Shown: positions 10,728 through 15,570 of the stretch, piece after piece
Numbering within the stretch: position 1 is the stretch's first letter
Layout: each line of letters begins with the position of its first letter
Sequence record: MZ666939.1
DNA length: 15,570 bases
Reading direction: 5' to 3' (one strand)
Program-made: the position numbers and the translations under genes
The notes under the pieces: generated by a model
What the model was told of the DNA's origin: nothing
Database searches by the model: none
The model's input: only the letters and a program-made list of their open reading frames with translations

Positions 10728-11042
10728 ATGATAAATAGAAAGAAAATTGAATTAATAGAAAAAAGAAAAAGAGAGAGAGCGCTTAAAGAATTAGAAATGA
10801 AATGTGATATTTGTCAATTGAGCCATTTTAACGAAGTATTTATCTTAAGGAATAATAGATTTGCTAAGATAGTCCCCCGCTCTATTTCTAAAACCAAAAC
10901 AAGTAGAGTTTGCTGGGAATGCGCTAGATGGTTGTTTAAAAATCGATATTATAATTTTGGAGATTCCTGGAGAAATCTTTTTTTTTATCAATTGCATATA
11001 AAAGATAAAAATAGAGAAAAATACATGGTGATTCACGCTTGA
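10728..11042 (+). CDS. Basic Zn-finger protein
   Basis: CDIC...CWEC. Confidence 0.75.
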   Translation: MINRKKIELIEKRKRERALKELEMKCDICQLSHFNEVFILRNNRFAKIVPRSISKTKTSRVCWECARWLFKNRYYNFGDSWRNLFFYQLHIKDKNREKYMVIHA

Positions 11043-11287
11043 CTGATTGGGATAGACTAGTGGATTATATCATCGATTATTTTCCCGACCCTTCATATTC
11101 AAGTCAAGATATTAGAGATTGGGCAAATAAGAGCGTTCCCGCATGGAAGTATATGGATAATAATACAAAAGACAAGATTTTGGGTGATTGGGAAAACTTT
11201 ATTTTGCCAGAAGTTAAGAGTTGGCTTAGACGAATGAGTGAAGGTTTTAGAGAGAGAATAAGAAGGTTTCTGGGGAGGGCTTATTAA
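11039..11287 (+). CDS. Trp-rich helical hypothetical protein (TTG start)
   Basis: GGTGA SD; TTGA overlap upstream; TAATG overlap downstream. Confidence 0.8.
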   Translation: MTDWDRLVDYIIDYFPDPSYSSQDIRDWANKSVPAWKYMDNNTKDKILGDWENFILPEVKSWLRRMSEGFRERIRRFLGRAY

Positions 11288-11499
11288 TGAGATTCTGTGA
11301 AATTTGTAGTAAATGTGAGATTGGATTAATGATTCATAATGCGTTGTACACATGGAAATGTAATCATTGCGGATTCAGTTATAAAATTGACCCATCGGGG
11401 AGAATTCCTAAAATTACGATTTTAAATCGTGGAAATAATAAAAGACGCTATATTTTGCCTTTAGATAGAAAAAACAATCATAGAGGGGTGAAATGCTAA
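11287..11499 (+). CDS. Zn-ribbon protein
   Basis: CEICSKC...WKCNHCGF. Confidence 0.8.
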   Translation: MRFCEICSKCEIGLMIHNALYTWKCNHCGFSYKIDPSGRIPKITILNRGNNKRRYILPLDRKNNHRGVKC

Positions 11500-11500
11500 A

Positions 11501-12409
11501 GTGAAGCAAAAGACTAAAATTAATTTTAAGAGAAGTTTCACCTGCGATAAATCGATTGCAAAAGGGATTAAGTTTTTGAATAAAAATGGATTTTATACCG
11601 TTGGATGTTGTTCGGGTTTAAAGATTGACCACGATAACGAAAGAAATAAAATGTATATCGAATTTGCGGGATTAAGCAAGGCAAAAGAGCTTAAGGTTAA
11701 ACATATAGCAAATCAATTTGGTTTTAATGTTAAAAATAAAAGGATATTGAGAATTGAGAGCGAAAATGATGATAAATTAGAAATGTTTAACGATTTTATT
11801 TCCTATTTGAAATATAATTCCCAGAAACTTAGTTTAAGAGCAATCGGAATCTCTAATTGGGCTTACGATTCTGAAAAGAAAAAAAGATATTCAATTCAAT
11901 TCTACGATTACGATTTTAACGGGGATATAGAACACATTCCAAGAGAGGATTTATTGCGAATATTAGAGATATTTCCTTACGATTGCTTAATGTATGAGAC
12001 TAAGGGGGGCGTTCATTTTATTAGCTTTTCGATTCTGTTGGGGCTTCATGTCTCTAAAGCGAGGGTTTTAGAAACGAGCAAAAGCTTAGAAGGTCAAGAT
12101 TATTGGACTGAAGGAAAAGATTTAACGTTGAGAGTAAGTGCAAAATGGAAATTAAGGCTTTTTAGAAAGCGTAAAATCGTGTCAAAAAAGCCAAAATTTA
12201 AAGGATTAATTAAAGGTCCGGATAATTTAATCAAAACTTCAAATACCTTTCTTAATTCGAAAAATCCGAATAAATACGTCGTTTCTAAAAATCATTTGGA
12301 ATTTTATCGGAAATATATGGATTTGCCCGATTGGGTTTATGAGCTATATGCTGATTGCGATATGAGAGATTTAAGGATTAAGAATTACCATTACAAAACG
12401 AGGGATTGA
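11501..12409 (+). CDS. Two-domain protein: TYW3-like N-terminal motif plus AEP primase-polymerase-like C-terminal domain
   Basis: N-terminus DKSIAKGIKFLNKNGFYTVGCCSG. C-terminus FYDYD (motif I-like), YETKGGVHF (motif II-like), DLTLRV (motif III-like). Confidence 0.55.
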   Translation: MKQKTKINFKRSFTCDKSIAKGIKFLNKNGFYTVGCCSGLKIDHDNERNKMYIEFAGLSKAKELKVKHIANQFGFNVKNKRILRIESENDDKLEMFNDFISYLKYNSQKLSLRAIGISNWAYDSEKKKRYSIQFYDYDFNGDIEHIPREDLLRILEIFPYDCLMYETKGGVHFISFSILLGLHVSKARVLETSKSLEGQDYWTEGKDLTLRVSAKWKLRLFRKRKIVSKKPKFKGLIKGPDNLIKTSNTFLNSKNPNKYVVSKNHLEFYRKYMDLPDWVYELYADCDMRDLRIKNYHYKTRD

Positions 12410-15186: not shown

Positions 15187-15510
15187 ATGTTAGCTAAAAT
15201 TACCAAAACATCAAATCAAATCGATTTTATTTTTGAGTGTAATTTTACTAATTTTTTAAAGAGGTTGCAGTTAAATCTTGCTCTCTTAAAAGAAAGGAAA
15301 GAAGTAAAAAGGATTATTCCTTTATTCTTGTATCCTATTAAGAGATTTGACATACAGAAAAGCGAAAACTCTCTTTTCTTAGTTAGCATAATACAGCGTA
15401 CCCCGTACCGTATCACCTCCGACCTAATCTGCAGATTAGGTATTATAGCAAAATGGTTTCTTTTGTTCTGTTATTGTTCTGGTTTGAATAATCATATTAC
15501 AAAAGCCTAA
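15187..15510 (+). CDS. Hypothetical protein; 3' third overlaps palindrome/repeat DNA
   Basis: AAGGAG SD 9 nt upstream of the ATG. Confidence 0.55.
   Translation: MLAKITKTSNQIDFIFECNFTNFLKRLQLNLALLKERKEVKRIIPLFLYPIKRFDIQKSENSLFLVSIIQRTPYRITSDLICRLGIIAKWFLLFCYCSGLNNHITKA
15422..15441. repeat. Perfect 20-bp palindrome ACCTAATCTGCAGATTAGGT
   Basis: Read directly; 10+10 self-complementary. Confidence 0.95.
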
Positions 15511-15524
15511 GACCTTAACCTTTA

Positions 15525-15570
15525 TGTTCCGTTCTGGTTTTGTTCTGTTCTGTTTTGTTCTGTTCTGTTT
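15525..15570. repeat. Pentamer tandem array, including (TGTTC TGTTC TGTTT)x2 at 15541-15570
   Basis: Six consecutive TGTTY units preceded by TGTTC CGTTC TGGTTT; more GTTCTG copies at 15465-15485. Confidence 0.9.

Follow-up and report, generated by a model that had tools for sequence, protein, structure and literature searches.

A gene of Lokiarchaeota virus WyrdV1 for what is most likely a minute primase-type enzyme with a reduced tRNA-methylase-like domain attached

Archaeo-eukaryotic primases (AEPs) are common in the mobile elements of archaea. The subject here is a gene at positions 11501-12409 of MZ666939.1, the complete 15,570-bp genome of Lokiarchaeota virus WyrdV1 (the whole of which is called the window below), and how its product compares with the AEPs described so far. 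The catalytic fold of AEPs is an alpha/beta core of two sheets that includes an RRM-like module. Three motifs define the superfamily: motif I (hhhDhD/E), motif II (sxH), which binds the nucleotide, and motif III (hD/E), which provides the third metal ligand (Kazlauskas et al., 2018; PMC5862659). AEPs of the PolpTN2, RepB' and PrimQH types also share an invariant and functionally essential Arg (the "Rh" of motif IV) just past motif III. Motif II varies between His and Gln in PrimQH- and PolpTN2-like AEPs, and active enzymes such as PolpTN2 have the Gln (PMC5862659). The catalytic residues of RepB' are D77, D78, D134 and R145 (PMC8567376), and the site of pRN1 ORF904 consists of D111, E113, H145 and D171 (PMC2965215). 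In both proteins formation of the first dinucleotide depends on a helix-bundle domain, and neither catalytic domain has primase activity in isolation (PMC2965215; PMC8567376). The PrimQH primase of a provirus in M. voltae A3 sets a precedent, since it shows an AEP in an element related to spindle viruses.

The second family that matters here is TYW3/Taw3 (PF02676), a group of S-adenosylmethionine (SAM)-dependent tRNA-yW N4-methyltransferases. Its defining features are the motif (S/T)xSSCxGR together with an Asp and a His that never vary, and yeast TYW3 cannot do without the Asp, the Cys or the Arg (Currie et al.; PMC5311493). In the reference protein SsTaw3 (1TLJ) the Asp is D25, which is essential, and the His is H73, at the end of a RAGNYA strand. 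The complete fold is made of an N-terminal extension, a RAGNYA domain and an SHS2 insert. Members of the RAGNYA fold, to which TYW3 belongs, bind nucleic-acid stems, or else nucleotides, at the sheet's open face (Balaji and Aravind; PMC2034487).

The deposited annotation of WyrdV1 has 39 genes, all on the + strand. The paper describing the virus reported no recognisable replication gene, with neither a family B DNA polymerase (PolB) nor a rolling-circle endonuclease, and its authors suggested that initiators of replication might be among the products of its short genes, or that the whole machinery might come from the host. No mention of a primase in wyrdviruses was found in the later Asgard-virus literature that was searched. 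A preliminary description of the window, made from its letters, had picked out one open reading frame (ORF), at 11501-12409, as the only replication-enzyme candidate in the genome, which agrees with the published annotation. The ORF exists as the deposited coding sequence QYW08128.1. The two protein sequences are identical, and tblastn against phage and archaeal-virus genomes matched the product to WyrdV1 at 100%. The product is most likely a tiny enzyme of the primase type, fused to a reduced domain that resembles a tRNA methylase. The features of the gene are as follows.

11501-12409, + strand: the whole gene, 302 amino acids from a GTG start that overlaps the 3' end of the upstream Zn-finger gene; QYW08128.1, "hypothetical protein"
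11825-12406, + strand: C-terminal domain (residues 109-302) with a probable minimal AEP (primase-polymerase) fold, found alone (about 170-200 amino acids) in most relatives; from the model and from PDB and Atlas matches
11894-11914, + strand: AEP motif I (I-Q-F-Y-D136-Y-D138), where strand 128-138 of the model ends; from conservation
11999-12019, + strand: AEP motif II (T-K-G-G170-V-H172-F), where a beta-strand begins; from conservation
12095-12103, + strand: candidate motif III (Q-D200-Y201), 11 residues ahead of an invariant Arg; placed by conservation and by the RepB' spacing
12119-12145, + strand: DLTLR and the residues that follow, with D207 variable and L210, R211 and K215 invariant; R211 is taken for a nucleotide-binding Arg like that of motif IV
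12218-12274, + strand: low-confidence insertion (residues 240-258, pLDDT about 50-70) present only in the closest relatives of WyrdV1
12284-12307, + strand: conserved C-terminal helix, with S262 in 62/64, H265 in 59/64 and Y269 in 54/64 homologues
11501-11824, + strand: N-terminal TYW3/Taw3-like domain (residues 1-108), helix-strand-strand-helix-strand-strand-helix with a RAGNYA-type core; from VIA-align, hhalign and weak Pfam TYW3 matches
11546-11632, + strand: TYW3-type signature (D16, L26-N27, T33-x-G-C-C37-S-G39-L40, H44); from conservation, hhalign equivalences and the defining residues of TYW3 (PMC5311493)

The case for a primase-type enzyme begins with the fold of the C-terminal domain. 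AlphaFold2 (AF2) modelled the full-length protein with a predicted local distance difference test score (pLDDT) of 88.3 and a predicted template-modelling score (pTM) of 0.73, and residues 105-302, from a diverse alignment, with 90.6 and 0.87. Foldseek of the two-domain model against the PDB gave only noise, and VIA-align therefore had to be run domain by domain against 48,161 PDB chains. Nine of the best ten chains for the C-terminal domain are annotated AEPs, with Z from 6.2 to 4.3. They include African swine fever virus (ASFV) PrimPol (Z 6.2), two LigD polymerase domains (Z 5.7 and 5.5), chains of small-subunit length from human, yeast and Tetrahymena Pol alpha-primase, cyanophage S-2L PrimPol, Prim-PolC and CAPP. 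The sole non-AEP among the ten is HP0184, an uncharacterised DUF1882 protein. Monkeypox virus (MPXV) E5, human PrimPol, archaeal PriS, RepB' and the herpes simplex virus (HSV) primase come below the top ten, and generic ferredoxin-like folds come later.

A search of the ESM Atlas points the same way. The domain matches a cluster with PF01896 (DNA_primase_S) in 49% of its members (template-modelling score, TM, 0.66, with 158 of the 198 residues aligned at 2.8 A), and further matches are to clusters carrying PF24387 (AEP-like) and AEP_C962R. The same families are recovered with the Atlas's own model of the protein, which is independent of the AF2 model. The nearest annotated language-model cluster is "primase 1D family, PF24387" (0.90), and by the tool's own count this feature search and the structure search are one source of evidence. 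Weak BFVD matches are to D5-type helicase-primases encoded by giant viruses and to archaeal filamentous-virus proteins that are uncharacterised. It is therefore very probable that the domain has an AEP fold. Two other candidates, a glycosyltransferase (from the DxD) and an HUH nuclease, found no fold support in VIA-align, Foldseek or the Atlas.

The next link to the AEPs is provided by conservation, which was assessed in 65 diverse homologues (64 at some positions) reaching down to 19% identity with WyrdV1. The preliminary description had read FYDYD, TKGGVH and DLTLR as AEP motifs I-III. All three lie where it placed them, as does its N-terminal pattern, and they are more than chance resemblances because they are conserved in homologues. 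FYDYD (residues 134-138, 11900-11914) fares best: position 136 is Asp or Glu and position 138 is Asp in all 64 homologues scored (100%). E-TKGGVH-F (residues 166-173, 11996-12019, with TKGGVH at 167-172) is largely conserved, with G170 in 64/65 (98%) and His at position 172 in 57 (88%), but six homologues (9%) have Gln there. The assignment of DLTLR (residues 207-211, 12119-12133) to motif III is a different matter. D207 is kept in just 23/65, and the invariant residue is R211, which fits the Arg of motif IV. Of the two outcomes that the preliminary description had named as refuting it, a fold lacking the AEP core was not seen, and variable D/H residues were not seen for the DxD and largely not for the His. 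Both R211 and K215 are found in 100% of the 65 homologues, and R211-V/I lies in a short strand 11 residues past D200. That spacing is the same as between D134 and R145 of RepB'. D200 itself is present in 53/65 and its neighbour Y201 in 61/65. The motif spacings are 34 and 28 in WyrdV1 as compared with 32 and 26 in pRN1 ORF904. By sequence order, spacing and secondary structure, rather than by superposition, D200 is the likelier motif III and R211 would be motif IV. Outside the motifs, D161 is found in 88% of homologues, and P231, S262, H265 and Y298 are nearly invariant.

The N-terminal domain gave stronger structural matches. When residues 4-108 were compared exhaustively with the same PDB chains, the top four were all TYW3/Taw3-like: 2qg3 (Z 11.4, 105 residues, 2.7 A), 2dvk (10.6), 1tlj (9.7) and 2drv (9.2). 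All four solved Taw3-like proteins are thus matched, and the aligned part covers about 105 of about 190 Taw3 residues. The SAM-binding regulatory domain of methylenetetrahydrofolate reductase (MTHFR) comes next (Z 7.5). The sequence contains D16-x2-I19-x6-L26 N27-x2-G30-x2-T33-x2-C36 C37 S38 G39, exactly as the preliminary description had written it, and hhalign of the N-domain family with eight Asgard Taw3 proteins lays residues 14-40 on the Taw3 signature (P 4.4e-4). The equivalences are D16 with Asp, L26-N27 with I-N, Y32-T33 with Y-T, C37 with Cys, G39 with Gly and L40 with Arg. Among 34 viral N-domains, L26, N27, T33, C37, S38, G39 and H44 are invariant, and D16 is present in at least 90%. 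The N-domain is homologous to the TYW3 core, with which it shares the heart of the fold, the Asp, the L/I-N pair and a Y-T-x-x-x-C-S-G motif.

Nevertheless, it fails the definition of the TYW3 family. The position of the essential Arg is L40 in WyrdV1 and Leu, Val or Ile in every relative, the domain is about half the size (about 105 versus about 190 residues), and the His comes 4 rather than about 22 residues past the motif (the hhalign alignment ends before H44). The N-domain is too short to hold all three parts of the TYW3 fold, and it differs further in being fused to an AEP domain. TYW3 is the Pfam family that matches most N-domains, yet the matches are weak (3/34, best E 0.012). At the gathering score PF02676 does not match the WyrdV1 protein, and hidden Markov model (HMM) searches of the WyrdV1 genome with PF02676, PF24387 and PF21897 were likewise empty. 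In other words, the TYW3-like half named in the preliminary description stands as to fold and signature, whereas the essential Arg and half of the domain are absent. A Zn site made of C15, C36, C37 and H44 was also considered, and was dropped because C15 and C36 vary. The domain would have been derived from the TYW3/Taw3 fold by keeping the Asp, the Cys and a His and losing the essential Arg and about half of the fold. It is predicted to be an accessory module, probably one that binds nucleic acid or a ligand and that keeps an Asp/Cys/His pocket, and methylase activity of the wybutosine type is unlikely. As a side observation, Pfam TYW3 was found in just 8/61 sampled Asgard genomes, and was not found in G001, a metagenome-assembled genome (MAG) that holds a wyrdvirus-like contig.

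How widespread is the protein? A word-indexed search returned 91 homologues, about 35 of them full length and about 55 consisting of the C-terminal ~190 residues alone; the few that are named are "hypothetical protein", and none has a functional name. An exhaustive profile search of 1.84 billion cluster representatives (50% identity) found just 59 clusters, nearly all of stand-alone proteins of 170-210 amino acids and none of long multidomain ones. The family is therefore small, compact and a sequence orphan. It is restricted to WyrdV1-like virus contigs. Sediment contigs from JGI account for 23 carriers, and 2 of the 400 Asgard genomes searched have the family. Among GTDB species genomes it is on three short contigs, two of which are in Promethearchaeota MAGs and seem to be fragments of viruses that were binned there. 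In IMG/VR no relative of the gene or of the neighbouring ATPase gene was found. A weak match in one Asgard genome (G188) was to phosphoenolpyruvate carboxykinase and is attributed to chance. One copy, 83% identical, is on a 1.75-kb contig (L005, 3-392) binned in a MAG labelled "uncultured bacterium". Its frame ends near residue 277 of 302. Probably it is a piece of viral DNA that was binned wrongly and may be truncated.

The preliminary description had regarded the joining of TYW3-like and AEP-like halves as the architecture of the protein. Both halves are recovered, but the fusion is not fixed, since most relatives have the AEP domain alone. The N-domain is patchy among WyrdV1-like contigs, and no separately encoded N-domain was found in contigs with AEP-only proteins. 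On a tree of the AEP domain (quick maximum likelihood, with SH-aLRT support only) its presence requires at least four changes across well-supported branches, and the distant members of the outgroup all lack it. The TYW3-like module also occurs unfused: a 937-bp contig encodes a stand-alone 122-residue relative (P0148) with the signature D-K-S...L-N...T-I-G-C-C-S-G...D-H. We could find no counterpart of the TYW3-like/AEP fusion elsewhere, and a literature search joining TYW3 with primase returned only the RAGNYA paper (PMC2034487).

The setting of the gene adds to the argument. When the ORFs of 29 related loci were compared by BLASTP with the proteins of WyrdV1, a recurrent order emerged: adhesin, g22-g26, AAA+ ATPase (g27), g28, g29, often the Zn-finger gene g30, and then the AEP-like gene (g31). 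The ATPase-g28-g29-g30-g31 synteny is found in about 25 wyrdvirus-like contigs. This fixed order across related loci makes the AEP-like gene a core gene of the WyrdV1-like lineage. The upstream neighbours that travel with it are these.

10728-11499, + strand: g28, g29 and g30 (Zn finger), three small genes between the morphogenesis ATPase gene and the AEP-like gene; from synteny

It is possible that they encode accessory subunits of a primase, and g30 has a weak match to Zn_ribbon_PriA (E 0.0015). Neither PolB nor a rolling-circle endonuclease was found in the sequenced parts of the approximately 25 syntenic contigs, and the few large ORFs of related loci that lack a WyrdV1 counterpart have no polymerase or Rep domain. 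In Muninn virus, an Odinarchaeia spindle virus with an ATPase 41% identical to that of WyrdV1, there is a protein-primed PolB and no homologue of the AEP-like gene. This fits the idea of alternative replication modules, although it is a single data point.

Other observations on these loci can be recorded. On a 29-kb contig (L002, 3979-6659) two large genes (419 and 470 amino acids) with no Pfam match lie between the g26 and ATPase homologues. A TFB/TFIIB-like gene often directly adjoins the AEP-like gene, upstream or downstream, in related loci (for example L011, 597-1328; L012, 627-1358; L028, 161-892; L013, 2650-2946), and in WyrdV1 itself two genes separate them. Finally, three copies of an 88-nt intergenic repeat (1024-1111, 2119-2206 and 2499-2586), 76-92% identical, head blocks of small genes.

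Which of the known AEPs does the protein resemble most? The motif pattern recalls the PrimPol-PV1 supergroup (PolpTN2-like, RepB'-like and PrimQH; PMC5862659). These are also encoded by mobile elements, conserve the motif I acids and vary between His and Gln at motif II, and the WyrdV1 family likewise has an invariant Arg downstream of motif III, at the same distance from the Asp as in RepB'. Unlike them, it gives no significant sequence match, has only about 190 residues with neither a PriCT/helix-bundle domain nor a helicase, and has its motif III acid in just 82% of members; no PrimPol-PV1 member has been reported with a TYW3-like domain. The best structural matches, however, are PriS (PF01896; chains at Z 5.1-5.5) and viral PrimPols (the N-domain of ASFV C962R, and S-2L). 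Compared with these the WyrdV1 domain is less than half the size, lacks the Zn-knuckle insertion and has no PriL partner gene. A third group, the small "AEP-like / primase 1D-like" proteins of PF24387, is similar in size (127-185 amino acids) and aligns with residues 111-238 at TM 0.74 by target. Yet the sole match between that model and a family member is below the gathering threshold, and the model misses WyrdV1 itself.

What might the protein do? Our prediction, which we hold to be fairly likely, is that it primes viral DNA replication and represents a new minimal AEP family with motifs like those of PrimPol-PV1. In this scenario it would act as a metal-dependent nucleotidyltransferase that supplies the primer for WyrdV1 replication and may also synthesise the initial piece of DNA. 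Metal ions would be held by D136 and D138 of motif I and probably by D200 of motif III, and the incoming nucleotide by G170-x-H172 of motif II, the motif IV-like R211 and K215. The host replisome would then take over, because WyrdV1 encodes neither a polymerase nor a helicase. The first dinucleotide would be the work of a partner or of the N-domain, or else initiation would differ from that of RepB' and ORF904.

Several observations weigh against this reading. The structural similarity is modest (Z 4-6, root-mean-square deviation 4-6 A), and Foldseek of the C-terminal domain against the PDB returned nothing under E 0.07. Sequence searches of Pfam, PHROGs, NCBIfam and the PDB produced no usable match, whether the query was the whole protein, either half or the family profile. 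A Pfam scan of the 65 members did produce two links: P0144 to AEP-like (PF24387; E 1.2e-4), from motif II to the LR-x-S-x-K stretch, and P0146 to RepB_primase (E 4.7e-4), over motifs I and II. Neither reaches the gathering score, and they are suggestive at most because an evidently spurious match is no weaker, namely PAZ_2 on P0118 (E 4.3e-5), which lies partly over the AEP region and is attributed to chance. With tblastn these two bridging members found no match in plasmids and phages. Alignment of the family with 30 Asgard PriS proteins (hhalign) gave E 0.53 and placed only motif II of the family on motif II of PriS, and a greedy alignment gained nothing beyond that motif. The other AEP families tried are almost absent from the Asgard genomes searched (PF24387 in 0/201, PF09250 in 1/151). 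Membership of the WyrdV1 family in any AEP family is therefore not established at the level of sequence.

The putative active site has its own difficulties. The third acidic residue varies, with D200 in 82% and D207 in 35% of homologues, and neither follows an obvious hydrophobic residue of a strand. Furthermore, D136, D138, D200, H172, R211 and K215 have been placed in one pocket by reasoning from sequence and not by superposition. No helix bundle is found in the AF2 model of the 302 residues. A complex prediction for the C-terminal domain with the helical, co-conserved g29 protein scored 0.00, which is evidence neither way. Lastly, the gene lies past the morphogenesis module, and not at the locus where the describing paper finds the replication genes of other wyrdviruses.

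Some of these observations would suit an active AEP-fold nucleotidyltransferase that is not a replicative primase. Such an enzyme might serve repair or translesion synthesis (as LigD-Pol and PrimPol do) or counter-defence, or might act on RNA or tRNA, with a stem-loop substrate brought by the TYW3-like domain. LigD polymerase domains score like primases (Z 5.7 and 5.5), the helix-bundle domain that serves initiation is absent, TYW3 proteins bind the anticodon stem-loop of tRNA (PMC2034487; PMC5311493), and the gene is away from the locus that the describing paper treats as the replication module. Nevertheless, this is a core gene in a lineage of 15-kb viruses with no ligase, Ku or other replication enzyme, and RNA targeting cannot be the core function given that most relatives and all outgroup members consist of the AEP domain alone. 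We consider a non-replicative enzyme unlikely.

A more radical idea is that the domain is not an AEP at all. Every Z is below 7, and the tool itself warns that such values can reflect common arrangements. The sheet might then be a generic one of the RRM-like or ferredoxin-like kind, belonging to another enzyme such as a DxD transferase or an HUH-like nuclease using H265 and Y269. S262, H265 and Y269 are indeed conserved on a helix for no evident reason, and the origin-binding domain of SV40 T-antigen and adeno-associated virus (AAV) Rep appear low in the structure match lists. However, generic ferredoxin-like folds rank after the AEPs that fill nine of the first ten places among 48,161 chains, the Atlas match spans 158 of 198 residues at 2.8 A, and there is no HUH motif. 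The language-model search gives the same superfamily, although it counts with the structure search as one source. A fold other than AEP is thus improbable. Perhaps, instead, the fold is derived from an AEP and has become a non-catalytic initiator that binds the origin or recruits the replisome. The varying motif III acid and the replacement of the motif II His in 12% of members would suit such a protein, and clustered repeats at the genome junction (see below) suggest some sequence-specific initiator. This is hard to reconcile with strict conservation of [D/E]xD, G170, R211 and K215 down to 19% identity, which has the look of a preserved active site, and the change from His to Gln is also seen in active AEPs such as PolpTN2. 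We judge loss of catalysis improbable as well.

The repeats in question are copies of the heptamer TGTTCTG, which occurs 12 times in WyrdV1 as compared with 0.88 expected. Nine of them are at the contig ends in opposite orientation, with the six at 15464-15567 on the + strand and the three at 129-155 on the - strand. Provided that the genome is circular, these copies flank a hairpin with an 8-bp stem (GTTCCGTTC/GAACGGAAC) at 49-68, which by itself is unexceptional (z -1.85). With the same proviso, the region 15464-15570 plus 1-156 looks like a candidate iteron-flanked origin. It is possible that the junction hairpin and iterons are a substrate of the AEP-like protein. The contig starts with a run of seven C.

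To return to priming by the WyrdV1 protein, the finding raises the question of how so small an AEP starts a primer with no helix-bundle partner. One enticing answer, which for now seems doubtful, is that the domain derived from TYW3 serves the primase as an accessory module of a new kind, namely a RAGNYA-fold stem-loop binder with an Asp/Cys/His pocket that replaces the helix-bundle or PriL-type domain. It would hold the template hairpin (for example, the junction hairpin/iteron region) or the initiating nucleotide, make priming responsive to SAM, or bring in a tRNA-like primer. An accessory TYW3-like domain on an AEP is unprecedented. If this were its role, no self-sufficient primase architecture smaller than that of the protein, with its AEP core of about 190 residues, would be known, and a tRNA-modification fold would for the first time have been recruited into DNA replication. 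More generally, the gene would add to the AEP superfamily a compact sequence-orphan family with a motif pattern like that of the plasmid and virus PrimPol-PV1 group. It is the first candidate replication enzyme for the WyrdV1-like lineage, and as such would fill a gap acknowledged in the paper describing the virus.

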